Source of the DNA: Octopus sinensis
Taxonomy: Eukaryota
NCBI RefSeq assembly: GCF_006345805.1
Contig: NC_043011.1
Coordinates: forward strand, 11,346,001-11,410,000
Reading direction: 5' to 3'
DNA: 64,000 nt
The position numbers were made by a program, and so were the translations under genes. Positions 7,325 through 61,280 of the stretch are shown in pieces. The first letter of the stretch is position 1. Each line of letters starts with the position of its first letter. The notes beneath the pieces are model-generated. The model had not been told where the DNA came from. It made no database searches and saw nothing but the letters and a program-made list of their open reading frames with translations.

Positions 7325-7559
7325 ATTTAAACAATACATATTTCGTAACGAGAACGTAATTACAAAACAAACAAACAAACGGGAAGGCAGACTACAGAAC
7401 AGTTTGGCTTGTTACTATGGACCCAGCCACCAATGTATCTGTGGCTTTCAATTGGCTAAATTTGCAAACTTTAGAAGCTATAAACTTTTTTTTATTAATT
7501 TATGGCAAAAATGAATTTCATTTCAATAAAACTACATCAATACCCTAAATTTGAAATCA

Positions 7560-10500
7560 ATTGGAACAAAATTGAAGGAATTGAAAAGTGAAAGCCAAAC
7601 AGAAAAAGATACCAGGAGTTTTCTACCAAGACTACTGTCAACAGTTAGTATCAAAACAAGCATTTCAATACATAGCCGACGAGCTAGCAGCAATGTGTAA
7701 AGTGTAACTCTAAACCCTCCAGCGGAAAACACTTAGAGATGCATTGGAACAACATCGCGGAAAACCGATGCTCAAATGTAAAAGTGTCTTTGGGGGAGTT
7801 TGGAAACAAGGCTTATATCACCAGAGAGAAAACAAATAATACACGGTTTAAGTGATATTCGGGACAGAAAATGAGGTAAAATTTCACTGAGGAATAAAGA
7901 ACTCTACCCAGTCCCCAGTGCCTAGCAAAAGTAAGAGTGATAAACATGTCACCAGAACTATCACCTATATAGTGACAGCCGTCTTGGTTGGTGTTGAGGA
8001 GGATGAAACCATTCGAGATAAAGAAAATACTGAAACAGTGAGGGTGTGGTATGGAACTGACTATACTAGCCAGAAGACATAGCTGACCTGATCAACCTCC
8101 CGGATGGTCTCCATCTATTCGCGATAATGGAGGGAGAAAACCAAAATGCTACATATGTGGATCTGTGACACTATTTACGAAAGAAGCAAGCCGCCCACTT
8201 TTACCAATGCTACAAGTACAGTGGTCACAACCTCACCAATGGGCAAACACACCAGCAGCAACAGTCCCAGAGACAGTAACAGCACCAGCAGAGGCTCCAA
8301 ACGCATGAGCCATAGAAAAACGACATCAGTAGCAACTCGAAAATACCCAATTCTTACAAAAATCACAACACTAACAATATGAAAGCCACGGAACATTCTC
8401 CTCCCCACTTCAGCTCACTCTGATATGTCATACGAAGAAAAAAATAAAACAAAACCATCCTCGTAAGAAGAGAAAAACAAGATGTAAACTCATAAATACA
8501 TAAAGCTGGCAGGAGAAAATTAAAAGCAGCAGCCCTGTAGGAATAGCAACATCAACTCCACAACGACAATCACCACCGTCACGAGATACACAACAATCAC
8601 CACAAACATCATCATCACCATAAACACCAACAAATACCATCATAAACGCAACTAAATTCACATTCACCAACAGCAAACTGAAGAAACGAAAAAATTTCAA
8701 CTACATGGCCATAAGCACACGATAAAGAATTAATTGAATATACCTATCAACAGACAAACATTAAGCTCAATGATTTTATAACACCACCACATGACTGGTT
8801 CTTAGAACTGACCAACAAGCATACTACAAACTGAAAACAAAATATCCCGACGGGATAGAAAATATCCGTGGATATACAAAAGAATATATTAAGAACTCCT
8901 TGTGAAAATATCCACAACTAACCGGAAGGGAAAAACAATGGTCCTTCCACAAGAATAAGGTAAGAGGTTCCTTCTTATTGAGCATAATCTTCCTCAAAAT
9001 AGGCTGCGTGAATGCACGTAAACTGGAGTCGTCTTGGAAACAGGGGCACTTTCTCAACGACTTCCAAACACTTGCTGTTGATGTGATGACCATCAGCGAG
9101 ATCAGAGTTTCAGGGATACGAGCCTTCACATTCACTTTTGGCGGCTACGAGGTACATGCATCTCTATACCTGATGGAATGGGGGTGCGGAGTCGCTGTGC
9201 TGTTTTGAAAAGGGTTGGATCTTGTGATACAAACCATCTTCCGGGACCTAGAAGGTAAGTCGGTGATATTTGACCAGTAGCAAAGGCCATTCCTTCAAAC
9301 AAACAAGTACATCGCGCTGCCCCGGCAGGAGGCGCGGTCGGCCGGACTTCTTCGGGCGTCTTGAGGCCTTCCTAGAAACGTGTCGCTCTTTAGTGCATAT
9401 GGGTAATCGGAACAGTATCTTGGATGCATGTAAGGGACTGTGCAGGCCTAGCTAACAAAAGAGGAGGTGCAAAAGTCTTACATACCTACTCAGACGTTTC
9501 CAACAATCTGTCACGTACCATTTGGATTTCCAGAATGCAGCAGTATGAACGTGAACAAAACGAATCGGATCGTTCAGATCGTTTCTAGATGGAGTATTCT
9601 GTAGACTTGCAGATAGGATAGCATAGGTTGACCACAATTCAAAATTGTCGGTTACCCAAATCACAAATCTGTGATCTATACGGTCGACCTAGATAGATTT
9701 TGTAGTCAGGATCCCGGTTACTGGGAGCTGAATGAGTTGCTTTCGCACACCAAGCTCACGGAGGCCGGATAAGCGAATTAATTAATCGAGCTATGACGGG
9801 AGCAATCGTTTAACAACAAATGGAGGTACGCTTTAAAAAATGAGCGATTAAAATAGAATCGATAAGGTTTAGTATAGAAACAGCGATAGAAAAATAGATT
9901 AGAAGAAGCTCTAGTTAGAAACGTCCCATTATCATCACTTGTAGGGGAATGTAACAGTATTTTAGACGCACGGAGAGAATGTGGGGCTAGAGCAAAGAAG
10001 GAGTACTAAAACCTCGTAAACCTGCTTAGATGTTTCAATTATCTGTCAGGTACTGACTCGATTTCTCTGATGTGCCACTGTGGATATAAAACAATTGCAA
10101 TAGATCATCTAGATCGTTACTAGATGGGGTATTTGACAGGTAAGCCGATGGGGATAATGTGAACATCAACTACACAGACCACAAATTTGCGATTTATTCG
10201 ATCGATTTTGATAGGACCTCTAGACAAGGACCAGGTTGCTGGAAATTTAACGTGTCCTTACTGGTGCGCAAAGGCAACAAGGACCAGATTAATAAATTAG
10301 TTAAATAGCATTTGACGGGAGAAATCGTCCACAAACAGTGGTGGGACACCCTTAAATGAGCGATCAGATCTGACTCAGTAGCGTTTAACAAAGAGCTAGC
10401 GATAGGAAGAAAAAAAGTTGGAGTTAGCAGTCTAGAAGGGATAATTATTAAAGGAATCGCGACCGCCATGGTAGCGGTGAGAATGGCTCTTGGCCATTTC

Positions 10501-11900
10501 CTCAGAGTGAAATGCGAAGGTTACGTTGCCAGGGCTAAGAACCGTGTAACGAAACACGAAGTAATAGAAGCTATTCAATGGGCTCGAGTGCGGAGGCGCG
10601 ACGTGGCAACAAAACCACAATTAGGTCATGGCAGGCGCGTGCAACACGGTTCCGGATAAGTGGGTGCGGCTTTCGACGACACATCGCTCGTCTTTTCAGG
10701 CGAACAATAGGTTGAAGATGGTAGTGGATTTATTTCGAATCTCGGTGGCTTGTCGCCACTCTGGTCAGAGGTTACGAAATGCTCTGGAAAGCAGCTGAAA
10801 TACTGGAGGCCAGGAGCAGTTGCACAAGACTGGTTTGGTTGGCCTGCACTTCGATTTTTTCGAATCTGTGTCAAATTTGTTTGGCAATGATTTGGGAGAT
10901 GTCTATTGCGATCAGCAGAGAACTAAAGAATTTCTAGCGCTGTGAGCAGGAGAGTGGTAACACTGCTGAGAAAGGACACAGTAAAGACAATTTTCAGTCC
11001 ACAACTCTGCAAATATTTTAGCCAAGATGTTAGCGAAAATATCGGTGCTTGTCGTCGGTGTTCAGGTCGAGGAAGCGCAATCTTGAACAGGTTCATCCAG
11101 CGAAGTGGAGGCGTTCGGCATTATTCCGGAGGAATGCTAGCAGAATCGTTAGCACGCCGGGCAAAACGCTTAGCGTCTGCCGCAATGTTCTGAGTTCAGA
11201 TTACGCCGAGGTCGACTTTACCTTTCATCCTTTCGGGGTCGATAAATTAAGTACCAGTGAAATACCGGGGTTGAGGAAATGGACTATCCCCCTCCCCCAA
11301 ATTTCAGGCTTTTTTCCTATAGTAGAAAAGATTATTTCAGAGGAATACGAGATGGTATTAATAAACTAAGATTAACCTGGACAAATCCGTGAGCTTGCAG
11401 ATCGGTACCTGGAGAGGCAGTTCCATGCCATGGGATGGTGTCGTGGAACCGATTAAACTGTTCGGTGTCTGGTTCGGTTCTGGAATAAGGTAACGAACAG
11501 AGTAGCCAGCTTTACCTAGAAATGGGCTTAAAGGAAGCTGTCCTCAAAAGTTCGGAGGTCGGGCAAAAGTAACGAATACCAACATCGACTCAGTTATGAT
11601 TTACCACCTGACCATTATGCGTTGCTCTAATTACAATCTGATCAAACTTGAGCATTTGGTATTCAATTTATTCTGAAAAGGACGAATTCTACTAGTTGTG
11701 TAGTCCATCTGCTGCCAGCACCATGGTGCGGTAGGCATTCTCTGCACCATTCGTGAGGTATTTCTTTGCAGCTTGTCTTCTTGACAGAGCTGCAGTCCAG
11801 CGTGAAGAAAAGGCTGAGACTAAGCGCTTATTACCTAGAATGTCCACTACCGATCGCTCAAAAGAATTAGTGAATGATCCACACCAGCAATCTGTAAAAT
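7560..11900 (+). mobile_element. Old, heavily degenerate L1/Tx1-clade LINE
   Basis: Remnants are collinear with the 57.5-63.4 kb element. They are the ORF1 knuckle GRKPKCYIC (~8140), the APE start LKIGCVNARKLESSWKQGHFLND (~8995), RMALGHFLRVKCEGYVARAK (~10480) and PIKLFGVWFG (~11450). Confidence 0.75.
11135..11305 (+). mobile_element. SINE family A copy
   Basis: Contains gcagaatcgttagcacgccgggc...gaggtcgactttacctttcatcctttcggggtcgataaattaagtaccag, a motif recurring more than 10 times in the window. Confidence 0.8.
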
Positions 11901-12159
11901 ATTAACGGCGGAGATAAATGAATTTATTGAGGAGTAGGTGAAAGTGAAAACGTTCTCAGTATAAGCCTGTAATAACTGGGAGGTGGGGGAGCAGTTTCTC
12001 TTGGTCTTAAGGGAGTTCTTAAATGGTGGATTTCTTCAATTGGCCCTTGAATCTTCCTCTATCAGAAGGATTGAGCAATGGTCATAATCATCATGAATAC
12101 TCATATGTCATGATTCTTTTTATCATTCCATTTATAAGTTTTCGTATCCGCCCCATTGT

Positions 12160-12194
<35 letters not shown>

Positions 12195-12681
12195 ACTGGC
12201 AGTGGATTGACAGAATTATTAGAGCGTCGGGCTGAAATACTTTACGATATTTCTATCGGCTCTCTTATATTCTGAGTTAACCACCGAGTAAAAGTTTACT
12301 TTTCGTGCCTCCGGGATTGATAAAATAAAGTAGCATTCAAGCACTGGCGTTTGGTGTGGTATCAACTAAAAGTCGCTGGCTTTGTGCCTAAATTAGAAAT
12401 AGGTTAAATAGACCTTCTATGATTTTTGCGACTGTAAATAAACGGCAAGAACCATAGAGATGAGGATATTTTACTTTCGATGTGTCAAAGTAATCCGGGA
12501 CTTGATGTACATCCCCCCCACAAAAAAAAATTCTTAGTTGGTTGCCCCTATTCTCTTTGGTAATCTTTTCTTGTTAATATTTTATTATCCTCTGACTTTG
12601 ATTTCACCTGTTTACTCGATGTAAATGTTCATTGTTTTGTTTCTCGTCCTTGTACTAGTCCTTCTGATCAATGAAATAATT

Positions 12682-12689
<8 letters not shown>

Positions 12690-12714
<25 letters not shown>

Positions 12715-12845
12715 GTTTAGCATCCGCTTTCCATGCTAGCATGGGTTGGACGGTTCAACTGAGGTCTGGGAAGCCAGAAGGCTGCAGCAGGCTCCAGTCT
12801 GATCTGGCAATGTTTCTACGGCTGGATGCCCTTCCTAACGCCATT
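12690..12845 (-). mobile_element. Short retroposon 3' fragment with (ATG)n tail
   Basis: A (CAT)n tract is followed by cgtttagcatccgctttccatgctagcatgggttggacg...ggctggatgcccttcctaacgcca. Recognised as an interspersed retroposon end by pattern only. Confidence 0.5.
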
Positions 12846-12849
12846 GTCG

Positions 12850-12945
12850 ATATTGTTACTACTACTGCTGCTACTGCTGCTGCTACTACTACTACTACTA
12901 CTACTACTACTAGTGCTATTGCTGCTGCTGCAGCTACTACTGCAG

Positions 12946-12984
<39 letters not shown>

Positions 12985-13032
12985 GTGCTATTGCTGCTGC
13001 TGCTGTAGCTGCTGCTGCAGCTACTACTGCAG

Positions 13033-13069
<37 letters not shown>

Positions 13070-13180
13070 AGCTGTTGCTACTGTTACTGCTGCTGCTGCT
13101 GCTACTACTACTACTACTAGTGCTATTGCTGCTGCTGTTGCTGCTGCTGCAGCTACTACTGCAGCTACTACTGCAGCTAC

Positions 13181-13224
<44 letters not shown>

Positions 13225-13255
13225 TCACAACCACCACCACCACCACCACCACCAT

Positions 13256-13290
<35 letters not shown>

Positions 13291-13350
13291 TTACTGCTGG
13301 TATTGTTGTTGCTGTTGTCATCATCATCACCATCATCATTATTATTACTA
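12850..13350. repeat. Compound trinucleotide repeat (ACT/GCT/ACC/CAT)
   Basis: Directly visible. It produces the spurious poly-T/A/V/S/L ORFs in the track. Confidence 0.95.
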
Positions 13351-13466
13351 TATACCAACAATGACGATAACAATGATTTGAGACTGGTTATCATTAATAA
13401 CTCTGACAATAGTGAGGTTGAAGAAATGTACAAGAATGCACTGCCAAGGCGCAACCGGTTCAGCAT

Positions 13467-16400
13467 TTATTTACTAGCAACCTGAGGAAGGGTTCCTTCG
13501 TACCCGTCTTTACTTATCAGCCAGAAAGTTGTCAGAGCACGTCCAGCAACAGTCATTTCTCCGCGTAGCTCAGTTTCATATCCTCCGAGTTGATCAAGAA
13601 TTTTTACTGTGTGTTCACTAAGCTGAATACGCAAAGGTTCTGAAGTCGATTCCATCGTGGCTGCAATTAACATTGTGTCGCCAAAAAGGGTGTAGCGCGG
13701 CATCTTTAAACCAACAACTCCGGCAACAACTGGTCCAGAGTGAGCGCCGATTCGCAACAGAAGTTTACAGTCTGGTAAATGCGGTACTTTCATTGCCAAC
13801 ATGGTTATGACTAAGTCCATTGCTGCTGTCGTAATTTCACCTGCATGAGCATTTCCATTTCGTTCGGGGACGCCACTTGCAACAACATAAGCATCTCCGA
13901 TAGTTTCCACTTTGTAGACGTCATATTTGTGCAGTATAGAATCGAATGTGCTGTAAAGGTTGTTCAACAGATCAACCACTTGCATAGGCTGACTGTTTTT
14001 CGCGATCGTTGTAAACCCGACTATATCGCTATAAAATACAGTGACACAGTTGAAGTCTTCTGGTTCCACTTTATTTCCGTGTTTTAATTCCTCTACCACT
14101 TTTTTGGGCAACATTTGACTTATAATATGATCAATTTTAGCCTTTTCTACTTCGAGGTCGTGGGTACGCTCAATCACCACTTGTTCGAGATTATTGGAAT
14201 AAGATTCCAATAGTCGAATTAAGTTGTCCATTAGTTCTCCCTTTGTCGGATGAATATTATCTAGCACTACAAGAAGCTTTGAAAATGGAGGTCTGAGCAG
14301 AGGTTCATCGTTCCATACGTCATCAAGCATTTTGAGAAATTTTCTCTGAGTTGTTTTCCCCTCTGGCAAATGTTCGCTTTTAAGTTGTGGCCGAATAACA
14401 AATATATCGCCTCCAATTGACTGCCATACTTTTCTCTCATCTTCTAGAAGAGGACTGTCTTTCTCCACTATGAGATCCAAAATAGCGCTTACAGATAGGA
14501 ACATCCGTTCATAAGCGTACGGTATGTCTCTGGTGGCAATTTCAGAAGCAATTATTCCAAATGAATAGACATCCCCTTCTTTAGTACCCATCTGAACGTC
14601 ATTTAGACACTCAACAGTTATTAGTAGTTCAGGAGCCGTCCAAAAAAGTTCGTTCATCTTTAATAATTCATACTGCCAATCTTTCTCTTCTCCAGCCATA
14701 AGGTACTGTCCATAGCGAATTGATGGACCGCCAAAACCGGACAAACGAATGCACCAGCGGTTATCAAGTAAACAATTCGATGATTTGAGACGTCCATGAG
14801 AGCCGATATTAGTTTTACTGTGAATGAAATCCATTCCACAGCAGATGTCTTTTAGAAAAGAAAATCGGAAATCCCAACCAAGTTGTATAGCATCATTGAT
14901 AAGAATATCTTCAAGACTGCCTTTATTCGCCGGCTCAAGAAAAAAAGACACGTTTGGATATGTGAGACAGGCTCCACCGTAAATGATTAAATTTTTGTGA
15001 TTCAAAGTCGTCAGTTCAACCATTTCTAGTCGGACCGCTTCATCATCAAGGTCAACGGTTCTACTGTTGAAGCGTTTCACAAACCATTTCTCACGCTTCC
15101 ACGTGTACAAATCATTAAACATTCGACTAACATGGGTCGCAGTTGAAACGTTCTTCGAATCTTTTTCTTGAGAATCGATTTTAACAGCTTCGTCCCAGAT
15201 AACGAGCCACTCGAGATTTGCCAGTGCAGTTCTGAGTTGGATGCGTTTGATTAAATACCTTATCAATAGATATATAAAACATATGAGCAACACTAGGGAA
15301 CAAATAACTGGAACGAGAATGGCTGCAAGGTGTATTGAGCAATATTTACCGAGCCACATTGATGATCTACACTGGCATTTATCGGGCTTCACGCATTTTC
15401 CATGTAAGCAAGGAGTGTTACATACCGGTTGGTCACAGCGCGGCCCTTTCCAGCCCGATTTACAGGTACATACGTCTGGAGTGTTACATCCGCCATGAAC
15501 GCAACTGCATGAAACATTCATACACCCATCTCCTAAATAGCCTTTGTTACATACACACACGTTCTCCGCAATGCAGACACCATTATTGAATACTGTAACA
15601 TCGTCTTGCGATATAAGATTACCACAGTTTTGTTTACACCTAAAAGGTGTTACTACCTTCTCCCTCCGGCGAAAGCCTATAGATGGCCATGGTTCGTTTG
15701 GAGCTTTAGCTAATATATTGTCATGCGCGCTAATCATTCCTGAAATTGAAGAATATTTTCTAATATTGTACGTATCAGCCATGGGAAGCGACATTGGTGG
15801 TAGTACATAATTATATGGAGGTTTATTCAATGGGTATTTAGCTTGGTAATTCACCTCTACTTCACCAGACTCTTTATATAGTACAAGTCTTATCGGGAGA
15901 GCTACTAAATTAGGGTCGGAATCAGAAGCATTGCCGATAGGATTAATCAAAATGATACTTCCCCTAAAGTCAGATCTTTTACCGGTCTCATCGAGACGCA
16001 CCTTTCCCGACAGTCCATTCAAATTAATTTTTTTCAGTTCATTTGAAATTTCATCTCCAAAAGCGGTCTTTTGTCGGGAAACTATATTGCTGATTGCTTG
16101 AGCCAACAGCCACATGGCATCATAACCCAGTGCCAAATAAGATGCTAGTTCTTCATTTGGATATATTGCTTTACTTCCTAAATACTCTGTTCTGTCAATG
16201 CTATAAAATCTTTCGAGTGTATGTAGCCATCTTTCGGTCCGGAAGTTTCCAAAATTGTAATTTTCTATAAATAGTAGTGACCCACGATAAGCATAGGTAC
16301 ATTTCGGTTCCCATTGACAGACGCCTTCGTTCATTAAAGGAAAGGATCGAGCATCTTCACTTATAAAAAGCCACTGATAACCGTCGAGTGCAGAAACACC

Positions 16401-18515
16401 AAATCGGATTCCAGAACGCAAAATGTATGGTAAAGAGCGAGTGGAAAAACAAATAATTATTTTTGTTCCGGCATCCTTTAGAGATCTCATTGCTTCACCA
16501 TAAAATTCTGGTTGCCAAGTGGTACCGGTGAAAGAATCGAATTCTGGGACGACCACTGGCATTGCGATCTTAATGTCGAATAATTGTGCTTTGTTGAAGA
16601 ATTCAATATCAACAGTCCTTCCGCTGGAGCTGATAGATGTTATCTTGAGCCATCTTCTAGCTTTACAAGCTCTCAGAAAAAAACTGTAAATTTCTGGCCA
16701 TCCCCAGCAAATTTTATTGAATAAATTGTATCGCAGAAAAGAATTATCTTTCTCAGTCAATGCAATGACTGGAATGTTGTCTATCATTGAGTTTCTGGCT
16801 ACGGCTTTTGTAATCAACGAACTTGCTGACAGAAGGATACCTCTCAATTCCGAATCGGTATTTTGATGTGTTTCTTTATACATTTGGTACTGCTGAACAG
16901 TAAATTCTATTTCATCATTAGTGTTGATTGATTCAACTGCAATTGACATACCATACTGTTCAAAAATTCCAGGAATCTCGCCCCAGCTTATGTCAGCAGC
17001 AGCAAATTTTACAAAAGTATCTATATGTGGATAAGGACTTTTAATCGTTCCAGCTGTATTGAAATCCCCAATGTGTCCTATGTGAACTAGACCAATCACA
17101 GAAAAAAGTGGAGAATTCACTACTGCAAATGAATGTGAAGATGAGGTAATTTCCATCACCACCGTAGTCATAATTGAACAAAATGAACCTCTCAGTTCCG
17201 CCAAGCCACCTGTTATTGATCTTGTCATATCCGTTGAAAGGCATGCATTCGGAGGGCGTGTTGTAATATTGAGGTTTATATTGGAATCTGGACCAGAGTA
17301 AATTCTATTATTGTTAGAATCTACAATTATTATTTTAATGTCTCCTGGAAGAGGAAAATTTCGAGTAATTATGTTACTTGAGTCATTTTTTAATTTGTGA
17401 CTAATTAATAACCTTGCAAGTTTCTGGGACTGAATATTAATAGGATTCGTAAAAGCCATAGCTGGAATTCCATCAATAATGCTGTCGGATAAATCAAAAA
17501 ATTTAACATAGTTTTCGGATTCATAAATATTTTTACGAGTTAAATCATCATAGCAAGTTTTACAGTTCGGTATTCTGATCCATGGATCTCTCGCCATATA
17601 CATAGTTAAATTCAAGCGAAAGCCGACAGCAACATCTAAAATCCGAATGTCTTTGAATGTAACTTTACCAGCTACGGCTTGTTGTCGTATAATTATATCA
17701 TTGGTACTTTGGTGTATCATGGTCGATTTGCCTGCCAATCGGATGTCCGTGTGTTTCAACATCATGTCTAGATTCTTTCGATAATAAAATTCTTTATAGC
17801 GATATGGTACAGTCAACTCTACAAAAGCGATGGAGTCTAGACCCGACGTAATAACTTTACCTACATTATCATGTATCTCGGCTTTAACGGTAAAACCTGT
17901 GTTGGCTCCGATTTGTACTGGTGGTTGTTTGGTGATGACGAGTTTAGCAGCAGGAGTGGTTATACGGAAAGGATGCGTGTCTATCGAAATAGATAGACCA
18001 GGGACATCGATTCTATATATTCGGTCGGTGTCTGGCACTAAATACGCATCGTGAGAATGCATAACCCAATCGATTATAATGGTTCCATTGAATACTTTCG
18101 CTTTTAGTGTGGTCGGTCCGATTGTCGAGCCACATTTCTTGACATATGTGTGGCGATTATATCTCATGGGTAGAAATACATCAGGATTAGTGTTTTGACA
18201 TAGCTTACCACCGGATATTCTCCAGTTGTCAACGTTCGCAGTACTCCTACTGGTCACTGTTACTTCTTGATCGTTTAGAGAACCATCCTTAACTTCACTT
18301 CCATCCAACCTATAAAAATAGGCAAAAATTGGATAACTAGTCAGTTCATTTAATGGTACTGAGTACTTCAAGTTGTATGGACTAGTTGGTATAACTTTAG
18401 GAGGCGAGTTGTGTTCGTCCAATCGAAGATTATATTGTTTTGCGGTAACCAACAGCAGTAGATAAAACAGGAAGATGTGACTGCTATAATAATGAGTACG
18501 CTCCAAGGAGAACAT
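13467..18515 (-). CDS. Atypical single-pass receptor guanylyl cyclase (natriuretic-peptide-receptor family) with an extended Ig-like/ANF/EGF ectodomain and a degenerate cyclase active site; single coding exon
   Basis: Uninterrupted 1682-aa ORF with an in-frame TAA 12 nt upstream of the ATG. Features in order: signal peptide (FLFYLLLLVTA); ANF/PBP1 motif ALGYDAMWLLAQAI...LNGLSGKVRLDETGKR; 3 EGF-like Cys repeats (15339-15638); TM (~15262-15330); kinase-homology HGRLKSSNC and FWTAPELL; coiled coil LESYSNNLEQVVIERT; cyclase VTVFYSDIVGFT, YKVETIGDAY, VVAGVVGLKMPRY. Confidence 0.95.
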   Translation of the reverse strand: MFSLERTHYYSSHIFLFYLLLLVTAKQYNLRLDEHNSPPKVIPTSPYNLKYSVPLNELTSYPIFAYFYRLDGSEVKDGSLNDQEVTVTSRSTANVDNWRISGGKLCQNTNPDVFLPMRYNRHTYVKKCGSTIGPTTLKAKVFNGTIIIDWVMHSHDAYLVPDTDRIYRIDVPGLSISIDTHPFRITTPAAKLVITKQPPVQIGANTGFTVKAEIHDNVGKVITSGLDSIAFVELTVPYRYKEFYYRKNLDMMLKHTDIRLAGKSTMIHQSTNDIIIRQQAVAGKVTFKDIRILDVAVGFRLNLTMYMARDPWIRIPNCKTCYDDLTRKNIYESENYVKFFDLSDSIIDGIPAMAFTNPINIQSQKLARLLISHKLKNDSSNIITRNFPLPGDIKIIIVDSNNNRIYSGPDSNINLNITTRPPNACLSTDMTRSITGGLAELRGSFCSIMTTVVMEITSSSHSFAVVNSPLFSVIGLVHIGHIGDFNTAGTIKSPYPHIDTFVKFAAADISWGEIPGIFEQYGMSIAVESINTNDEIEFTVQQYQMYKETHQNTDSELRGILLSASSLITKAVARNSMIDNIPVIALTEKDNSFLRYNLFNKICWGWPEIYSFFLRACKARRWLKITSISSSGRTVDIEFFNKAQLFDIKIAMPVVVPEFDSFTGTTWQPEFYGEAMRSLKDAGTKIIICFSTRSLPYILRSGIRFGVSALDGYQWLFISEDARSFPLMNEGVCQWEPKCTYAYRGSLLFIENYNFGNFRTERWLHTLERFYSIDRTEYLGSKAIYPNEELASYLALGYDAMWLLAQAISNIVSRQKTAFGDEISNELKKINLNGLSGKVRLDETGKRSDFRGSIILINPIGNASDSDPNLVALPIRLVLYKESGEVEVNYQAKYPLNKPPYNYVLPPMSLPMADTYNIRKYSSISGMISAHDNILAKAPNEPWPSIGFRRREKVVTPFRCKQNCGNLISQDDVTVFNNGVCIAENVCVCNKGYLGDGCMNVSCSCVHGGCNTPDVCTCKSGWKGPRCDQPVCNTPCLHGKCVKPDKCQCRSSMWLGKYCSIHLAAILVPVICSLVLLICFIYLLIRYLIKRIQLRTALANLEWLVIWDEAVKIDSQEKDSKNVSTATHVSRMFNDLYTWKREKWFVKRFNSRTVDLDDEAVRLEMVELTTLNHKNLIIYGGACLTYPNVSFFLEPANKGSLEDILINDAIQLGWDFRFSFLKDICCGMDFIHSKTNIGSHGRLKSSNCLLDNRWCIRLSGFGGPSIRYGQYLMAGEEKDWQYELLKMNELFWTAPELLITVECLNDVQMGTKEGDVYSFGIIASEIATRDIPYAYERMFLSVSAILDLIVEKDSPLLEDERKVWQSIGGDIFVIRPQLKSEHLPEGKTTQRKFLKMLDDVWNDEPLLRPPFSKLLVVLDNIHPTKGELMDNLIRLLESYSNNLEQVVIERTHDLEVEKAKIDHIISQMLPKKVVEELKHGNKVEPEDFNCVTVFYSDIVGFTTIAKNSQPMQVVDLLNNLYSTFDSILHKYDVYKVETIGDAYVVASGVPERNGNAHAGEITTAAMDLVITMLAMKVPHLPDCKLLLRIGAHSGPVVAGVVGLKMPRYTLFGDTMLIAATMESTSEPLRIQLSEHTVKILDQLGGYETELRGEMTVAGRALTTFWLISKDGYEGTLPQVASK

Positions 18516-18556
18516 CTTTGAAACTGCTTACGTCCTTGTTACTGGGAGGATCGTGT

Positions 18557-18580
18557 CTGCAAAAACAAACACAACTAACA
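18557..18580 (-). promoter_or_regulatory. Putative splice acceptor of a 5' UTR intron of the cyclase gene
   Basis: The minus strand reads ttgttagttgtgtttgtttttgCAG|acacg, a T-rich tract plus CAG 41 nt upstream of the ATG. Confidence 0.5.
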
Positions 18581-19237
18581 ATAATTTTATAAATAATGAT
18601 TCATTTTCGTTCGAGAGGATTAGATCTCAACACTTAATTATCAAACTATATATAAACTTAGATAAACTTAGATATGTTTCGACCAAAGATTGGTCCAGGC
18701 CATGTCTAACTTAATAGCACCACCTGATAGGATTATTCGAATCCTGTTTAAGTCAAGTCAATTCAGGATTATTTAATTTCTAGATAATTCTATTTCGTTA
18801 TACTTATTTAGCGAACGGTTGTTTTTAAAGTTATAAGAACTTAAACTGATCACGCTAAAAGAAATTAGAATCATATCCGAAGTTGTTTCCCGTATTTATT
18901 GGGTGAAAAAAAAAAAATGAAACACTATTTTCTCATCGCATTTCCCTCTAGTTTAATTATTTAACACAATTCATTATGTAAGTGTAAATTAAATTAGAGA
19001 GTCGAACTCAGTGTATAACGTCATGTAGTTTACATTTAAATCCTGCCGATGTCAATTTTGCCTTTCATCCTTTCAAGATCGATAAAATGAAGTACCAGTT
19101 AAGTAGTACCTCGTCGATTTATATTGCTTTAGTGCATCATACATGTGAAACAAATTATAATAGAAGATGAATTTCTAGATGGTTTGTCTATTCAGCTGGA
19201 TAGTCGCCCTTTATTACATGTGACAAAACTGATCATA

Positions 19238-20471
19238 CGAGGGGTGTTCATTAAAGATTTCCCCTGACCCACTTCCGGTTATTGCAGGAAACGGAACTCG
19301 TACAAGTATAATCATACACGTCTCTACACGTCACATTGTAAATTGCAGCTCTCCACTAGCATTCGTTTGTCTTTTAATCTGCTAAAGTGGACTAAGATGT
19401 TATAATATCGTACCCCAAAAGAGACTTTCAATGAGATGAAAGAAGCTTATGGTCACAATGCACCATCATACGACGTAGTCAAGCACTGGCATCGCCAGTT
19501 CAAATGTGGTTGGACATCTGTGGAAACTGCTTCTATCTCTGGACGACCACATTCCACCATTGATGACGACACCATCCAAAAAGTGGAAACCGCCATTTTA
19601 GAGGATCACTGCATAGCTATTCGGCAACTAGCGCAAGAAGTGAAGATAAGTGTATGGTCCGTGGAAAAAGTCATTCACGACCATTTGCACATGCAGAAGT
19701 TGTCTGCACAATGGATTCCCCGGATGCTCACACCTTTTCAAGAGCAGAAACGAGTCAATTGCTTTCAGGCTCATACGGCAATGTGCCAAGAAAACGACGA
19801 GGACTTTTTCGGCAGACTTATCCCACAGGATGAAACATGGGTCCATCACTATGATCCTGAGACTCGAGTCCAGTCGAAGCAATGGAAGCATGTTAACTTA
19901 CCACATCCAAAGAAGGTTCGTTTCCAATCCTCAGCAGGCAAGCTGATGCTCAGTCTTTTGGGACCAGCGTGGAGTAGTGATGATGGATTTTCTGACAAAG
20001 GTCACCACAATTAACGGGGGGGGGGCATATTATGCTTCTCTGCTGCAGAAATTGCGGAACGCCATCAAAGCAGAGAAGCGTGGCATACTGACCAAAGGAG
20101 TCCGCCTCCTCCGAGGCAACGCCCCATGTTGCCCAGATGAAAGCACAATCCTGCGGTTATGAAATCCTTTCTCATCCTTCTTACACTTCCAACCTTGTAC
20201 CATCTGACTTCCACTCCTTGCCAATCATGAAGTCTTTTTTGAAGTGTAAGCAATTTTCGGATGATGGACTTATTTCGGAGGTAAAGTATTGGCTCCAGAC
20301 GCAACCTACCGACTTCTACAGACGAGGCCTTCACAGCTGCATAAAACGATGGGAGAAGTGTGTCACCATTGGTTGTAGCTATGTAGAGAAGGACTAATAG
20401 TAATGCCCAGTTTCGTTTATCTCAGTGACTTGGGAAGTCGGTCAGGTGAAATCTTTAATGAACACCACTCA
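19238..20471 (+). mobile_element. mariner (DD34D) transposon, full length, decayed transposase
   Basis: TIRs of about 32 bp (CGAGGGGTGTTCATTAAAGATTTCCCCTGACC / GGTCAGGTGAAATCTTTAATGAACACCACTCA) with TA on both sides. ORF pieces contain WIPRML, DETWVHHYDPE and HPSYTSNLVPSDFH. Confidence 0.92.
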
Positions 20472-36265: not shown

Positions 36266-37292
36266 ATACAAATACAGATGCCATGTCTCGCTAAAAATGC
36301 AGACACTCAGAGTAAAGCCAGCAACACGAAGCACATATATACTACAACTAACATCATCAACCACTCCACCAGGTAACCCTCAACAATAACACTTAAATGC
36401 TTTTCCAAACACTGTTACTGGAGGAGTGTATAGTGGTTAAGTGTGTGTGTAAACAAATACGTAAACCGATTCATGATTGAAATGAATTTATTTACAGGGC
36501 TTGATCAGTTATAAGTACACTACATACAAAATGTAGGCAACTGCTACGATTTGCTAGAAATACAGAGTACATTCGTGAGAAGTCATATTGGGAATGAATA
36601 TGTTTGTGTGTGTGTGCGTGTTTCATTCGAAACAATAGTCTATCGGCACTTTGAACATTTCTCTCTGTCTCTGTCGTCTGCCAAAAACCTTGGGTCGTAG
36701 ATAGATCTATCTCATCTGTCTGCTCCCGTCTCTGCTGCCATTGTCTGCCTGCATTTCTGTTTCACCCTTGTATTTATAATATTTGTGGCAGCTAGAAAGA
36801 CAGACATACTGCAGCAGAGTTTGTACCTAAATAGGTCAGCGCTTGTCCAGTTGAACTTCGCCTGACATGATGAGGTCACAGGTCAAAGGGAGATGATCAA
36901 TCAATTTTTGACAGGACAAAGAAAACCTTTTTTCCCGCCTGTTGATTGTCGTGGTTTGGACGACCGAGAATTCATGGATTCGGTTTCGAATCTAGGCTTA
37001 GAGAAGGAAGTGTTAATTCTTATACTACCCCCACAAGTGGCTTCAATGTATTCAACATATGGGTTTTGGAAAAATACAAATAATAATACAGGATGTGAAA
37101 TAACATCTCAACTTAACTTAACTTTACATACACACTTATAGCTTAAAGTACCCGCACCACATACGTTCTTCACGAAACCATCTTCAATTCTTCCTCATGC
37201 ATTAGCTTTTTGTTCGACACACTTGCTGTGTACTTGCTACCACAATCACATGGTAAGTAATTCCCCGGCCATTTTGAATAATAGCTTAAACG

Positions 37293-37840
37293 TTTTCAGT
37301 TACTGACAGATCGTTTGTTCATAAAAATAAGAAAAAATGGCTCATACTTCAAAACCTCTTGTGGAATCAGTTTCATCAAGAAATAGAATCAAGGTTTTCA
37401 GAACTCAACATCACAATAACTAACATCCATCCAATGAAGTAATTATGGGCACACTTAAAAAGTATCCCATAGAAAGCCGGCAGCCAGGCGGTCCATATGA
37501 GCTCCTGCAAGACTTCTCAAAGTGGTGTATACAGGTCCCTTTTAGGTCTTCTCAAAATGGCCCATATATACCCCTGCCGAACTTCTCACAGGGGTCCATA
37601 TAAGTCCGTGGTGAATACAAGCTTAAGGAATCCATTGGAGATGAATATAGTAATTCGCATTTATAAATCCATTTACAACAGAAGAACAAATACCGCTTGA
37701 TCAGATATCGTACATCTAGCAAAATGTTTGACTGGATGTGATAGCCACTAGTGATGTGCCTTTTACTTACAATCCGTTCATAAAGTATGAGCCACTTTTT
37801 CTTATTTAAATGAACAAACGATTTATCAGTAACTGAAAAC
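37293..37840. repeat. Inverted-repeat pair (~57 bp), possible MITE
   Basis: 37293-37350 (ttttcagttactgacagatcgtttgttc...tggctcatactt) is the diverged reverse complement of 37783-37840. Confidence 0.55.
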
Positions 37841-38116
37841 ATCTAAACTACATGGTTTTTTTGTTTCAAGTTATTTAGAAATTTAGTTCTGTATTAAAGT
37901 GAACAAAGGGGCATAATGTATTGGAAATGGTTATTTCGTGAATACTTTGAAATGTAAGTCTTGTATCGTTATTATAACATTACAACACTTGATTTTTCCA
38001 TTTTTCTCTAGTTTCAAAACTATAAAGCTTCTAATACATTTTCATTTCTTTCCAGATTGTTTCGAAAAATATTCGACTCAATCGTAATCTCCGTGATCCA
38101 GATTACATTTCCAGTA

Positions 38117-39065
38117 TGCCTAAAGCTACGAAGTTTTCCGAAATTGAGCAAGGGAAATTCTTGCACTGAAAACGGAAGGAATGAGTACTTGGAAGGTTGC
38201 CGAGAAGATTCAGCGAAGCAGAACGCCAGTGGACAATTTTCTGAAAGATCCCAACGGCTACAACAGGGTTCGTGCTGGTGAACGTCTCAAGGCTACATCA
38301 GAAAGCGATGAAAAGCCCATTGTCAGGGTTGTGAAGAAGTCACGCTGCCCTTCTGTTTCCAAAATCAAGGTACCAGCAAGTCTAGGAGCCCCGACATCCA
38401 CCGTAAGAAGAGTGAGTTTGAACCATAGTTTCCACCTGAAGAACCGGCTACAGCGTCCGTTATTGTCCCCTTCTCACAAAGCTGTTAGATTGGAGTTTTC
38501 TCGGCAGCATCAGACGTGGGATGATGAATGGACCAAAGTTCTGTTCTCTAATGAGGACAAATGGAATTTGGATGGTTCCGGCGGTTATGAGTATTACTGG
38601 GCAGATAAATGTTTACAAAAATTCTACTTATTCCAAGTGGCAGAACAGCAGAGGAGATCTTATGGTGTAGGGAGCAATATCTATCAATGGGAAGCTGCCA
38701 CTTGTCATCATGGATGGCCATTTCAATGCTGCACGATACATCAATATGTTGGACGGGGCTCACATTGGCGAAGAAAGAAGACTCCATGGTGAGAACTTTA
38801 TATTTCAACAAGACAATGCTCCTATTCATAAAGCAAAGACGACTTTGGATTTCCTCCATGCAGTAGTATAGAGAATGCCTTGGAATATCTCACGAATGTT
38901 GTGCACAGCGAAGGCAAGCAGTATTCATCTGTTGGACTTGAAACGGCAATAAAGAAGGCCAAGGAACAGTTTCCACTTGATCTGCAGCAGGGGTTGATTG
39001 GGAGCATGAAATTGCGTGTCTTTGAAGTAATTCAGAAAGGTGGTGGTCACACACAACATTGTTGA
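38117..39065 (+). mobile_element. Tc1/Tc3-like transposase, decayed
   Basis: Contains RPLLSPSHKAVRLEF...WTKVLFSNEDKWNLDGSGGYEYYW, resembling Tc3 WSKVVFSDEKKFNLDGPDG, followed by FQQDNAPIH in a shifted frame. Confidence 0.85.
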
Positions 39066-39329
39066 TGTATTTCATGAGAATATCATTGAAATATATCATA
39101 ATTTCTCTGTTTTGCATAATTTTTGCAACATTATTCAACATGGCGTTATAGTTTTCAACAGGGGTTTCTGGTTCTATGTTTTTTTAAAAAAAATATCATC
39201 TAATTTATTTTTGGATTTCAATAAATTTGAATGTTGCAATGTTTTCTATTCCATTTTCTATCTGGAGGTGAGTTTCATGAATTTGAGTAGTATAGTTCAC
39301 CAGAAAAAAAAAACAAAAAAAAACAGACA

Positions 39330-41890
39330 GGCGCGGGAGTGGCTGTGTGGTAAGTAGCTTGTTAACCAACCACATGGTTCCGGGTTCAGTCCCACTGCGT
39401 GGCATCTTGGGCAAGTATCTTCTGCTATAGGCCCGGGCCGACCAATGCCTTGTGAGTGGATTTGGTAGACGGAAACTGAAAGAAGCCTGTCGTATATATG
39501 TATATATATATATATGCGTGTTTGTGTTTGTATGTCTGTGTTTGTCCCCCTAGCATTGTTTGACAACCGATGCTGGTGTGTTTATGTCCCCGTTACTTAG
39601 CGGTTCGGCAAAAGAGACCGATAGAATAAGTACTGGGCTTACAAAAAGAATAAGTCCCGGGGTCGAGTTGCTCGACTAAAGGCGGTGCTCCAGCATGGCC
39701 ACAGTCAAATGACTGAAACAAGTAAAAGAGTAAAAGAGAGTGCTCTGGCTTTATAGTTTTGAAGAGCAGTTTAGATCTTTTCGGTGTCCTGAAAGACACA
39801 TATCTTCCCTAAAAGAAACATTTGTGAACAAATTAAATTATAAGAACACTGAATTTTAAAATATTCCATTATAATGCAAAAATATATTTAAATAGTAAAA
39901 AAAAGTTATTTGATAAGAATGAAATCGTCGTCGGCTCGTCCCTCGAACCCGAGGATTGATTTCTCCTCCTGGACGAATATTTAGACCACTAATGCCGATG
40001 GTGAATGTGACTAACGAGGCCAATCTTCGCATTAGAACACGCCACTGCATTGGCTACATGTGAATGTCGGAGTCGGTCGTCGTTGCAGTCGTCTCGAAAA
40101 CCAGCGGGTCGAAGCTGGTCTGCTTCAGCGTTGACTTTAGCTGATCTTTGTAGCATCGAAGAGGAGCTCATCTTTGTCTTTTCTCGGTTGCCAGTTCGCT
40201 GAACAGGATTTGACGAGGAAGTCGTTCTCCGCTAATCTTGGTGACATGGCCGGCCCATTGAAGACGATGTTTGATGATTAGGGATTCGATGCGCTGGCTA
40301 TTCGCTCTTTCTATCATGGAGGTATTGGAGACATAGTCAAACTACTTGATATTCAAGAGAGAGCGAAGCTTCAGATGATGAAAGCGTATGAGTTTTTTAA
40401 ATGTGCGCAGGAGTGGCTGTGTGGTAAGTAGCTTGCTAACCAACCATATGGTTCCGGGTTCAGTCCCACTGCGTGGCATCTTGGGCAAGTGTCTTCTGCT
40501 ATAGCCCCGGGCCGACCAATGCCTTGTGAGTGGATTTGGTAGACGGAAACTGAAAGAAGCCTGTCGTATATATGTATATATATATATGCGTGTTTGTGTT
40601 TGTATGTCTGTGTTTGTCCCCCTAGCATTGTTTGACAACCGATGCTGGTGTGTTTATGTCCCCGTTACTTAGCGGTTCGGCAAAAGAGACCGATAGAATA
40701 AGTACTGGGCTTACAAAAAGAATAAGTCCCGGGGTCGAGTTGCTCGACTAAAGGCGGTGCTCCAGCATGGCCACAGTCAAATGACTGAAACAAGTAAAAG
40801 AGTAAAAGAGAGTGCTCTGGCTTTATAGTTTTGAAGAGCAGTTTAGATCTTTTCGGTGTCCTGAAAGACACATATCTTCCCTAAAAGAAACATTTGTGAA
40901 CAAATTAAATTATAAGAACACTGAATTTTAAAATATTCCATTATAATGCAAAAATATATTTAAATAGTAAAAAAAAGTTATTTGATAAGAATGAAATCGT
41001 CGTCGGCTCGTCCCTCGAACCCGAGGATTGATTTCTCCTCCTGGACGAATATTTAGACCACTAATGCCGATGGTGAATGTGACTAACGAGGCCAATCTTC
41101 GCATTAGAACACGCCACTGCATTGGCTACATGTGAATGTCGGAGTCGGTCGTCGTTGCAGTCGTCTCGAAAACCAGCGGGTCGAAGCTGGTCTGCTTCAG
41201 CGTTGACTTTAGCTGATCTTTGTAGCATCGAAGAGGAGCTCATCTTTGTCTTTTCTCGGTTGCCAGTTCGCTGAACAGGATTTGACGAGGAAGTCGTTCT
41301 CCGCTAATCTTGGTGACATGGCCGGCCCATTGAAGACGATGTTTGATGATTAGGGATTCGATGCGCTGGCTATTCGCTCTTTCTATCATGGAGGTATTGG
41401 AGACATAGTCAAACTACTTGATATTCAAGAGAGAGCGAAGCTTCAGATGATGAAAGCGTATGAGTTTTTTAAATGTGCGCAGGAGTGGCTGTGTGGTAAG
41501 TAGCTTGCTAACCAACCATATGGTTCCGGGTTCAGTCCCACTGCGTGGCATCTTGGGCAAGTGTCTTCTGCTATAGCCCCGGGCCGACCAATGCCTTGTG
41601 AGTGGATTTGGTAGACGGAAACTGAAAGAAGCCTGTCGTATATATGTATATATATATATATGTATGTGTGTGTATGTGTTTGTGTGTCTGTGTTTGTCCC
41701 CCTAGCATTGCTTGACAACCGATGCTGGTGTGTTTACGTCCCCATCACTTAGCGGTTCGGCAAAAAAGACCGATAGAATAAGTACTGGGCTTACAAAGAA
41801 TAAGTCCCGGGGTCGATTTGCTCGACTAAAGGCGGTGCTCCAGCACGGCCGCTGTCAAATGACTGAAACAAGTAAAAGAGTAAAGAGTAA
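39330..41890 (+). repeat. Tandem duplication with a 1,072-bp period: SINE B - spacer - SINE B - spacer - SINE B. The spacer contains a minus-strand RTE 3' fragment.
   Basis: Identical ORF pairs are offset by exactly 1072 (39593/40665, 39856/40928, 39989/41061). The spacer translates to HRLQWAGHVTKISGERLPRQILFSEL on the minus strand. Confidence 0.95.
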
Positions 41891-41959
41891 TACAAAGTCC
41901 AAGTTTTACAACCATAGAGGTTTAGTCTTTGTTTTTGAATACAGGTTTTGTTAGTTTAC

Positions 41960-43790
41960 CGAAAGCTGAGTAAGACAATCTGATTCATCGTTTCATATTT
42001 TTCTCAAAATTGCATTTGGTGGACAGCGCACTTCCAAGGTATGCAGTGGTGTGCACGAAATGACGATGTTAAAGTCTGGATGGGCAGAATTTGGGGCTGG
42101 TTGGGTGAGTACTTGTGTTGTTTTAGTATTTATAGTGATCCCAAAATGTTGATATGCATTAGGGAAATTATTGACTGCTTGTTGCAGCTCTAAGCATGAG
42201 TGACTGAGTACCATGTTGTTATCGGAGCACTGGAGTTCCGAGATTCGTTTGGTACTAATAAGATTCTTTGACTGAAAGCTCGTCGAAGAGTCCCCCATCA
42301 AAACGATATCCACTGGCTGATCTGGGGAAGGTTCATGAATCATTGCAGCAAGGAAACAAACGTAGGAACGAGTACGCAACCTTATTTCAATCCATATGCC
42401 TTTGGGAATTCTTTTGATAGTCGATCACGTTCAGTCTTACCATCGTGTAAAGTTTGGATCAGGGAAACGAAATGATCAAGACATCCGAAACGATCAAGGG
42501 CCATCCACATGACTAGTCTTAGTATACTGTAAAAAGCCATTTCCAGATCATAGAAGACAGGGAAAATGGGTTTTTGCTGTTCTCTGTACTGTTTGTTCTC
42601 TGGATTTGTTTGTTACAGAAGATCATGTCTATGGTTCCACTGGGATTCTGGAAGGACTCTTTCTGTGATGACCTGGAGACGGTTCAATAATATTTGAGCA
42701 AAGATCTCCAGAAACGATATTTCACGATAGTTCACACAGGATTTTCTATCTTTTTTCTTGAATATACTGACTATGACGGCGTCTTTGAGATCATTTGGGA
42801 CGTGCATTCCACAGCTTTAGAAATAGGGTGAAGAGTTTAGTTTGCAGCGGCAGTCCGCCATGTTACAGCAATTCTAATGGGATGTTATCGGGTCCCAGAG
42901 TTTTTCTTGCTTTCATACGTTCCACTGCCTTCTGGAACTCTTGATACGATGGAGGAATATTCATCCAAGATTGCAATGGATGGAAAGGGATTTTTCACAG
43001 CAAGTCTTCAGTTGTTGTTAACTCACGATTTTTCAAAACAGAAAACTGTTCCTTCTAGTGGTCTAGGGTGCCCTGCGAGACAGTTAAGATGATAACATTG
43101 TCTGTCGCAAGCAGGATGCCATTTAACGACCTTACAGAGCCAAATAGAGGTTCTATTCCAGCATAGAAGCTTCTAAGATCTCGTGTAACACCCGTGCTCT
43201 CTGTTGCTACCAAGTGTTTTGTAGCTCTCTCAGCTGGGTTTGGCACGTTGTGTGATATTCTTGTAGCGTGTTTCTTTAAACCTGCATCTTGGATCTTGTT
43301 CATGGGATGATAACTAGGCCTTTCGTTTTTCATCGCTCAAACCGTTGATTATCACTCCGTTGTCATCAAACCAGTCTTGACTCTTTCTTTTGAAGAATCC
43401 GATATTGCATTTGGCGGCTTCGGAGATGATATTTTTCAAGGAAGATAATTTTTCTTCTAAGATTTGATATCTGCAAATTTGGGTGGAATTTTGATATATG
43501 ATTCTGCAACGGTGGTCCTGGAATTTTGGGATGTCAAATTTACGACGGGAAGGGTGATCATGGTGGAACCTTGTTTTTTTGCAGATGGTGAGATGACCAA
43601 GACAGTCCAACAATCATTTGCACAGTGAGCTGCTCTAGTGATACAGACATCCTTTCTATCTCTTCGACAGACAATGACATAATCGAGAAGGTGCTAGTAC
43701 TTTGATCGAAGGTGCATTCAAGTGGTCTTCGAGAGATTGGAAAGTCAGAACTGAGTGTTCGTGTTGTATAGCTCATGCTACTTCAATACT
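41960..43790 (-). mobile_element. Degenerate RTE LINE fragment
   Basis: Contains RKSQDWFDDN, LKDAVIVSIFKKKDRKSCVNYREISFL and QQAVNNFPNAYQHFGITINTKTTQVL. Confidence 0.8.
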
Positions 43791-61240: not shown

Positions 61241-61280
61241 GTTTCAAAAGTTAGAGGAAAAAAAAAGGAGAAAAAAGGCT

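Follow-up and report, generated by a model that had tools for sequence, protein, structure and literature searches.

A one-sidedly degenerate cyclase domain under strong constraint in an intronless octopus receptor guanylyl cyclase

Receptor guanylyl cyclases (GCs) generally act as homodimers. What could be the function of a receptor GC whose cyclase domain has kept one face of the catalytic site intact and lost four of the five residues of the other? This question is raised by a gene located on the minus strand of a 64,000-nucleotide stretch of Octopus sinensis DNA (NCBI RefSeq assembly GCF_006345805.1, contig NC_043011.1, positions 11,346,001 to 11,410,000), hereafter called the window, in whose coordinates positions are given. 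Positions 13467..18515 constitute a single uninterrupted open reading frame (ORF) that encodes a protein of 1682 amino acids without internal stop. This window protein corresponds to the deposited Octopus vulgaris protein CAI9736311.1 ('receptor-type guanylate cyclase gcy-4-like'), from which it differs at 5 residues, all of them in the ectodomain. An exact-sequence lookup of the window protein gave no match because of these differences. The protein, which we assign to a clade named Group A (see below), has the following features:

13467..18515, minus strand: receptor guanylyl cyclase of Group A; complete ORF in a single exon, with 1682 codons and a stop codon at 13467-13469
18438..18515, minus strand: probable signal peptide (aa 1-26, hydrophobic core FLFYLLLLV), read from the sequence, boundary approximate
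17070..18437, minus strand: family-specific N-terminal ectodomain extension (aa 27-482), about four immunoglobulin (Ig)-like sandwiches, predicted all-beta from a model, no Pfam match
15951..16691, minus strand: ANF_receptor (periplasmic-binding-protein type I) ligand-binding region (PF01094, aa 609-855, E 6e-13)
15336..15632, minus strand: three juxtamembrane EGF-like repeats (aa 962-1060; Pfam match aa 962-1063)
15258..15335, minus strand: single transmembrane helix (aa 1061-1086, IHLAAILVPVICSLVLLICFIYLLIR), Kyte-Doolittle maximum 3.08
14274..15095, minus strand: kinase-homology domain (aa 1141-1414; PF07714, E 4e-20)
14067..14273, minus strand: coiled-coil/dimerisation linker (aa 1415-1483), aligning to NPR1 791-837
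13515..14066, minus strand: class III cyclase domain (aa 1484-1667; Guanylate_cyc PF00211, E 4e-53)

The order of the Pfam domains confirms that the gene encodes a receptor GC, as the initial annotation had proposed. All the elements expected of such a receptor are present, i.e. a hydrophobic N-terminus, an ANF_receptor/periplasmic-binding-protein-type domain, a single transmembrane segment, a kinase-homology domain, the linker and a class III cyclase domain. The hydrophobic N-terminus and the strong transmembrane segment predict a type I receptor topology. The ANF_receptor domain probably extends beyond its Pfam match, from about aa 483 to 900. The kinase-homology domain carries HGRLKSSNC at the place of the HRD motif of kinases, a replacement that is usual among receptor GCs. 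A Pfam scan detected no domain in the first 600 residues of the protein. The AlphaFold2 model of the N-terminal extension is confident (pLDDT 89.8, pTM 0.83) and all-beta, and a Foldseek search with this model returned only generic multi-Ig matches with low TM-scores (S-layer SbsC, invasin, mastigoneme and alpha-2-macroglobulin domains). These matches indicate the fold class of the extension and provide no functional lead.

The residues of the cyclase domain were scored with the eight-position catalytic scheme of Allerston 2013 (PMC3591389). In this scheme, positions 1 and 3 are the metal-binding Asp residues and position 4 is Arg, all supplied by the alpha subunit of soluble guanylyl cyclase (sGC). 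The sGC beta subunit supplies the base-specifying Glu and Cys (positions 2 and 5), the ribose-binding Asn (position 6) and the phosphate-binding Arg and Lys (positions 7 and 8). The initial annotation had distributed the residues between a C1/alpha half and a C2/beta half in agreement with this scheme. Where a canonical enzyme has D, E, D, R, C, N, R and K, the window protein has the following residues, the codons of which were all checked directly:

14025-14027, minus strand: GAT, D1497
13905-13907, minus strand: GAA, E1537
13893-13895, minus strand: GAT, D1541
13752-13754, minus strand: CGA, R1588
13689-13691, minus strand: ACC, T1609 in place of the guanine-specifying Cys
13668-13670, minus strand: TTA, L1616 in place of the ribose Asn
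13656-13658, minus strand: ACG, T1620 in place of the transition-state Arg
13545-13547, minus strand: GCT, A1657 in place of the phosphate Lys

The codons of both Asp residues are exactly where they had initially been placed, and the retained Arg and Glu as well as the Cys to Thr, Asn to Leu and Arg to Thr changes are verified by these codons and by alignment. Over their whole length, the linker and the cyclase domain can be aligned with human NPR1 and GC-C. In the HMMER alignment to both proteins (9bcv and 8fx4, respectively), PRYCLFGDTVNTASRMES is replaced by PRYTLFGDTMLIAATMES, and KGKG/KGRG by AGRA. The initial annotation had likewise read AGRA for the phosphate-binding motif KGKG. The second Lys position is occupied by Arg in GC-C too, and the real loss is limited to the first Lys. 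Likewise, the proposal that the losses fall on one half only is right in that the alpha/C1 face is intact (D1497, D1541, R1588); the beta half, however, has not been lost entirely, because the Glu of KVET (E1537) belongs to the beta/C2 half and is retained, leaving four of its five residues changed. This Glu is likewise retained in sGC alpha and in NeoR, a fungal protein discussed below. From the codons, at least two base changes are needed for each of Cys to Thr, Asn to Leu and Lys to Ala, and a single one suffices for Arg to Thr (AGG to ACG). Sequencing errors at single bases do not account for these residues, since other species, assembled independently, have the same ones. In the window sequence alone the one-sidedness is no more than suggestive; the weight is carried by its persistence throughout the clade.

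Every catalytic site of a class III cyclase spans the dimer interface and combines the alpha face of one chain with the beta face of the second; a dimer unable to put together the full residue set, such as an sGC homodimer, is inactive, and the C541S substitution alone lowers activity 40-fold (PMC3591389). The window protein does not carry the full catalytic set of an active homodimer. Because the sites are built across chains, the NxxxR pair formed by positions 6 and 7 would be absent from each site of a Group A homodimer, which should make little or no cyclic GMP (cGMP). We thus consider it very probable that the Group A homodimer is inactive. With both metal Asp residues and the alpha-side Arg kept and the NxxxR pair absent, the domain has the composition of an alpha/C1-type half-site. 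The reading that we favour, with a rough probability of 0.5, is that Group A proteins are the alpha-like subunits of a heterodimer with a canonical paralogue of a clade called Group B. In such an A/B heterodimer, Asp, Asp and Arg from Group A would be joined by Glu, Cys, Asn, Arg and Lys from Group B in one active site. The second, degenerate pocket, with a Thr that is invariant in the clade, might be an allosteric site, and the Group A ectodomain would add a second ligand input to the cGMP output.

The degenerate pattern is not private to one assembly. An identical PRYTLFGDTMLIAATMES, together with AGR(A/T), is present in O. vulgaris, O. bimaculoides (XP_014782344.1), a third octopod represented by sequencing-run assemblies (protein P0002, 85% identical to the window protein) and Argonauta hians (protein P0003, 66% identical), which answers the initial call for an orthologue check of the substitution pattern in other cephalopods. 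A deeper branch of Group A has T/Q/T or T/Q/N at the Cys, Asn and Arg positions, so that two deeper-branching members are also devoid of the canonical residues; from the shape of the tree, one might guess that these members are decapodiform. Both metal Asp residues are retained in seven of the eight Group A copies. The ratios of nonsynonymous to synonymous substitutions (dN/dS) were estimated by the Nei-Gojobori method for the window gene versus P0002 and versus Argonauta. They are 0.41 and 0.22, respectively, for the whole protein, 0.69 and 0.28 for the Ig-like extension, 0.02 and 0.14 for the coiled-coil linker, and 0.037 (dS 0.26) and 0.058 (dS 1.4) for the cyclase domain. The cyclase domain is among the best-conserved parts of the receptor, with the lowest dN/dS of any domain save the adjoining linker. 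The ORF is intact in four octopod species, and neither a broken ORF nor a dN/dS near 1, as a processed pseudogene would have, was observed. The initial proposal of selection rather than decay is supported by these comparisons: the degenerate pattern is kept by selection.

Full-length relatives have about 1620-1700 amino acids and the same architecture, and all the named ones are molluscan; two O. vulgaris entries exceed this length and seem to be tandem copies joined into one. When the N-terminal extension was used for an exhaustive HMMER scan, only six representative clusters were detected below E 1e-30, and the family is therefore small. In all members for which genomic DNA was read (L004 of Argonauta, L006 and L007 of the cephalopod-like sample ERZ21867824, and L009 of O. 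vulgaris) the gene is a single uninterrupted ORF. Therefore, being intronless looks typical of the family and not indicative of a dead retrocopy. With the cyclase domain alone as query, a homologue search returned only short fragments and no further cephalopod orthologues; these fragments were reused as a background sample (see below). Another search, with protein P0005, did not add any named species.

A neighbour-joining tree of 1667 columns was rooted with canonical members of a bivalve (Potamilus) and a gastropod (Gigantopelta). The cephalopod clade of the window protein, Group A, was recovered as monophyletic in 50 of 50 bootstraps; its sister is a cephalopod clade composed of Groups B and C. 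Given this monophyly and the canonical outgroup, the loss arose once, on the Group A stem, and has been retained since. The catalytic residues of Group A are D, E, D and R, then T, L/Q, T/N and A/C, with the Thr at the Cys position invariant. Group B has the canonical set, except for a Phe at the Cys position in one O. vulgaris gene (L009a). In Group C (P0015, P0017 and P0018), Glu is replaced by Asp, Asn by Asp or Glu, and Arg by Lys or Gly (Arg is kept in P0018); the Lys loop is absent, and the motifs read RIDT/KFDT and GKTIDIALKM or GETVEIAF(G/R)M. Group C and protein P0157 of the same family, which reads FSNIVGF and GEDVLIAQYLEA, have degenerated independently of Group A. Around NxxxR, Groups A and C (MLIAAT and IDIALK) resemble the VDIANK of the C1 domain of transmembrane adenylyl cyclases (tmACs) in the alignment with AC8. 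By eye, the Group A linker is closely similar to that of Group B.

Group B genes, intact and intronless, accompany Group A in all three examined genomes that have a Group A gene, namely those of O. vulgaris, Argonauta and sample ERZ21867824. A candidate partner with an intact beta/C2 side is thus encoded in the same genome. In O. vulgaris, three or more intact Group B genes are carried by a chromosome other than that of the query. Two of them are tandem ORFs in L009 on OX597825.1 (7382..12613 and 37004..42085, about 24 kb apart), and P0007, a further Group B gene, probably lies on OX597825.1 too. L009b and P0007 read PRYCLFGDTVNTASRM(E/Q)S, and L009a reads PRYFLFG, with Phe for the guanine-specifying Cys; at the Lys motif, P0004 and P0007 read VKGRG. 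The deposited model P0004 (2485 aa) appears to merge both tandem ORFs of L009, and P0007 (1866 aa) begins with a stray cyclase fragment of a neighbouring copy. Argonauta has the Group A protein P0003 and the Group B proteins P0013 and P0014. Sample ERZ21867824 has P0006, P0020 and one more copy in Group A and P0012 in Group B; it probably also holds Group C, as P0015 and P0012 are recorded on contigs of equal length (48168 bp), probably one and the same contig. In the window itself, tblastn with Group A, B and C proteins revealed no second cyclase gene, and there is therefore no partner within these 64 kb. All Group B proteins have fixed substitutions adjoining both metal Asp residues (SDIV[N/D]F for SDIVGF and I[S/C]D[S/T]Y for IGDAY), where the Group A motifs are exactly canonical. 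As a sequence pattern, these substitutions could mark the start of a complementary specialisation.

The best-studied analogue is NeoR of chytrid fungi, which has no NxxxR, is inactive alone and forms a heterodimer with canonical RGC1 or RGC2 that has one active site; disruption of nucleotide binding in the degenerate site raises the activity up to ninefold (PMC12264004). Like NeoR, the octopus protein combines a membrane receptor, a coiled coil and a class III GC domain without NxxxR (T455/K459 in NeoR, L1616/T1620 in octopus), the metal Asp residues and the base-specifying Glu are kept, and canonical paralogues are present in the same genome. Unlike NeoR, in which the sensor is a fungal rhodopsin and the base-specifying Cys is kept, the octopus protein has an animal Ig/ANF/EGF ectodomain and a Thr at the Cys position, and Group A and Group B genes are on different chromosomes whereas the NeoR genes are clustered. 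The NeoR heterodimer has been demonstrated, whereas the octopus A/B heterodimer is a prediction. Another analogue is ODR-1/DAF-11 of Caenorhabditis elegans, described in PMC5225109, citing Morton 2004, as an obligate heterodimeric receptor GC in which each monomer gives essential residues to a single site. These are animal receptor GCs with the same transmembrane, kinase-homology, coiled-coil and cyclase core; they differ from the octopus protein in their separate nematode origin and by the absence of Ig-like or EGF modules. Both nematode partners are reported to be incomplete, whereas the candidate octopus partners are fully canonical.

The alpha1 subunit of sGC (GUCY1A1) supplies positions 1, 3 and 4 (D486, D530 and R574), as the octopus protein would; its homodimer cannot rebuild a full site, and the pseudosymmetric pocket of the heterodimer has been proposed to be allosteric (PMC3591389). 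Unlike the octopus protein, sGC is soluble, regulated by haem and nitric oxide through an H-NOX/PAS N-terminus, and its beta partner is itself one-sided. The query cyclase domain matches NPR1 (E 7e-73) far better than sGC alpha (E 5e-41). The alpha-like state is therefore convergent with, and not inherited from, that of sGC alpha, the tmAC C1 domain and NeoR. Like the octopus domain, tmAC C1 keeps the two Asp residues and has no Asn/Arg (VDIANKLES in AC8 C1 and MLIAATMES in the query, versus VNTASRMES in canonical GCs), and the degenerate site of tmACs binds forskolin. However, tmACs are intramolecular pseudo-heterodimers with adenine specificity and 12 transmembrane helices. NPR1/GC-A and GC-C, the best sequence matches, have the same order of ANF-receptor, transmembrane, kinase-homology, coiled-coil and cyclase domains; they carry all eight catalytic residues and are without the Ig-like extension of about 450 amino acids and the EGF repeats.

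Could the gene be a decaying retrocopy, i.e. an intronless processed receptor-GC copy drifting to a pseudogene, or an annotation artefact? The single 5-kb exon lies amid transposon remnants, and two Group A copies of sample ERZ21867824 have one frameshift each. These are two tandem Group A-like genes in L010 (ENA ERZ21867824 ctg74894l, 2-1971 and 8717-13824), which both keep D, D, T, Q and T and are frameshifted near 1144-1159 and near 10000, respectively; the frameshifts may be assembly indels, or the genes may be young pseudogenes. But all members for which genomic DNA was read have the uninterrupted ORF, and this ORF is intact in four octopod species with dN/dS of 0.2-0.4 for the whole gene and 0.04-0.06 for the cyclase domain. 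On the basis of these dN/dS values and the conserved ORFs, we rejected the pseudogene reading, which we hold to be extremely improbable. It would also be conceivable that the homodimer is active in a non-canonical manner, substitute residues or another geometry still making cGMP or another cyclic nucleotide, with a base preference altered by the Cys to Thr change. In favour of this, the domain is very strongly constrained and has kept its metal site, the Glu and its overall fold. However, Asn to Leu and Arg to Thr remove both the transition-state and the ribose contacts, with no replacement nearby. Moreover, NxxxR is described as a motif that active class III cyclases conserve to a high degree, and NeoR, having lost it, is inactive alone (PMC12264004), as are sGC homodimers without the full residue set (PMC3591389). 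This makes activity of the homodimer very unlikely, although less so than decay.

A more serious competitor, which we regard as a real possibility although at less than even odds, is a pseudo-cyclase. The domain would never be catalytic and would serve for dimerisation, as a scaffold or as a regulatory module that binds nucleotides. The signal would pass by way of the kinase-homology domain or by sequestration of a partner; if paired with Group B, the protein would simply halve or block the activity of the latter as a dominant-negative or decoy. The NxxxR pair, the Cys and the Lys are indeed lost, and a strong constraint is equally expected of a structural or regulatory domain. Several further observations weigh against an alpha-like subunit. 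With four random changes among eight positions, the chance that all fall within the five beta-side positions is p = 5/70 = 0.07. In the background sample of 120 related cyclase-domain fragments, slightly biased because the query itself is alpha-type, 104 read DEDRCNRK, and the 14 clearly degenerate ones have 27 beta-side changes versus 1 alpha-side change. Beta-sided degeneration is thus common among receptor-type cyclase domains, and part of the reason may be that the strands bearing the Asp residues are structurally constrained, rather than that a half-site is selected for. The Group A protein P0006 of the cephalopod-like sample ERZ21867824 has Asn at both metal positions, yet its ORF of 1698 amino acids is intact; therefore, the alpha-side residues are dispensable somewhere, and a dead domain is tolerated there. 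The Group A sample is thin, with eight copies, three of which come from this same ERZ21867824. Among the family members collected, no paralogue was found that keeps Asn/Arg and is without the metal Asp residues, so that the partner search initially suggested yielded canonical Group B genes and not a strictly complementary subunit. Being canonical, Group B should be active by itself and needs no Asp donor; Group A would then not be needed for catalysis and could equally lower activity. Finally, Logan contigs of 5.7-6.4 kb (L001-L003) had been considered as transcripts and were rejected as such; they are genomic, because they are collinear with the window, including the mariner remnant upstream of the gene, and end in the downstream microsatellite. 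On the other side, losses on both faces, as in a fully dead pseudo-cyclase, are found only in P0006 and not in the octopus gene. The metal Asp residues and the Arg with their flanks (FYSDIVGFTTI and KVETIGDAY) are the same as in canonical enzymes in seven of the eight Group A copies, and this identity has been kept in a clade that is, by a rough estimate, more than 200 million years old. In addition, the NxxxR-less subunit of NeoR does contribute to a single active site (PMC12264004). The heterodimer and the decoy readings overlap, because pairing with canonical Group B would also halve the number of sites of Group B.

The initial annotation had seen here the best candidate for an undescribed signalling system. 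This was overstated, as NxxxR-less subunits that need a canonical partner are documented for NeoR/RGC1-2 (PMC12264004) and for ODR-1/DAF-11 (PMC5225109). The principle is already known from sGC alpha/beta, tmAC C1/C2, ODR-1/DAF-11 and NeoR/RGC; what is new is the phylum, the independent origin, the architecture of the ectodomain and the split into Groups A, B and C. If the heterodimer exists, it would be the third independent origin of asymmetric receptor GCs, after nematodes and chytrid fungi, and one catalytic site plus a regulatory pseudo-site would be a repeatedly favoured class III design. Groups A, B and C would then be a set of orphan receptors with an unusual ectodomain, of interest for cephalopod neurobiology and sensory biology. 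Should Group A turn out to be purely a pseudo-cyclase, we would have a clear example of an enzyme domain that is dead and yet very strongly constrained (dN/dS about 0.05), helpful in asking about non-catalytic roles of cyclase domains. In both cases, what is gained is a wider range of examples and a new receptor family rather than a new mechanism. One may speculate further that cephalopods re-invented an sGC-like alpha/beta division inside a mollusc-specific intronless receptor family. Groups A and, independently, C would be alpha-type and ligand-sensing, Group B, with its fixed substitutions beside both metal Asp residues, would be drifting to a beta-type, and A/B and C/B pairs would be combinatorial, every pair having a single catalytic site next to an allosteric pseudo-site with a Thr invariant in the clade. 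This scheme is tentative, and we consider it rather unlikely as a whole. Our literature search found no article on octopus receptor GCs or on this family of molluscan receptor GCs with an Ig/ANF/EGF ectodomain, which is absence of evidence only.

Some observations concern the ectodomain and the surroundings of the gene. The Ig-like module at about aa 166-236 (nt about 17808-18020), with the pattern ITKQPP...ANTGF.V.AEI.D..G..V..GLDS, matches a module of which some very large proteins carry up to 14 copies; one of these proteins, P0148, also has MAM domains. Pfam gave no clear match for the repeated module in the two large proteins scanned (P0148 and P0152). Immediately 5' of the ATG, a segment of about 115 bp (18516-18631) has a tblastx match at the same position in Argonauta hians (L004 9885-10000) and may be a conserved 5' untranslated region or promoter segment. 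About 250 bp upstream of the gene start lies a mariner/Mos1-like transposase remnant (18760-19583, and ORF 19436-20014 on the plus strand) with a weak match to the helix-turn-helix domain HTH_48. It is collinear and 82% identical in the P0002 octopod, and is therefore an old insertion common to both species. Directly after the stop codon of the gene, the region 12741-13466 contains an imperfect TAC/ACN-type trinucleotide microsatellite of about 440-600 bp, in which Tandem Repeats Finder (TRF) reports an array at 12857-13295 with 146 copies and 81% matches. The orthologous contigs L001-L003, from another octopod, terminate inside this microsatellite. The four long ORFs (136-216 aa, on both strands) that it yields are low-complexity artefacts.

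Farther away, the window contains several other repeated elements. A LINE-type retrotransposon occupies 32525-35853 on the minus strand, with two overlapping ORFs, one (34555-35853) for an endonuclease/exonuclease/phosphatase domain and the other (32525-34795) for a reverse transcriptase (RVT_1 E 4.5e-33). A fragment of a second non-LTR (long terminal repeat) element is located at 59645-62646, also on the minus strand; its ORF of 531 aa (59645-61240) has an Exo_endo_phos domain (E 6e-18), and the ORF of 373 aa beside it (61525-62646) has no Pfam match. A tandem array at 39331-41877 comprises a minimum of three units, each about 1,072 bp long and 91-99% identical in parts, with a diverged copy of the unit at 30973-31361, 8.4 kb upstream of the array. 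A short piece of this repeat also matches the Argonauta locus (L004 about 7550-7700), and it is therefore probably a dispersed octopod repeat. The ORF of 203 aa at 38181-38792 on the plus strand has a sub-threshold match to a Tc3-type transposase helix-turn-helix domain (PF01498, 29.8 bits versus a cut-off of 31.5) and is probably another Tc1/mariner remnant.

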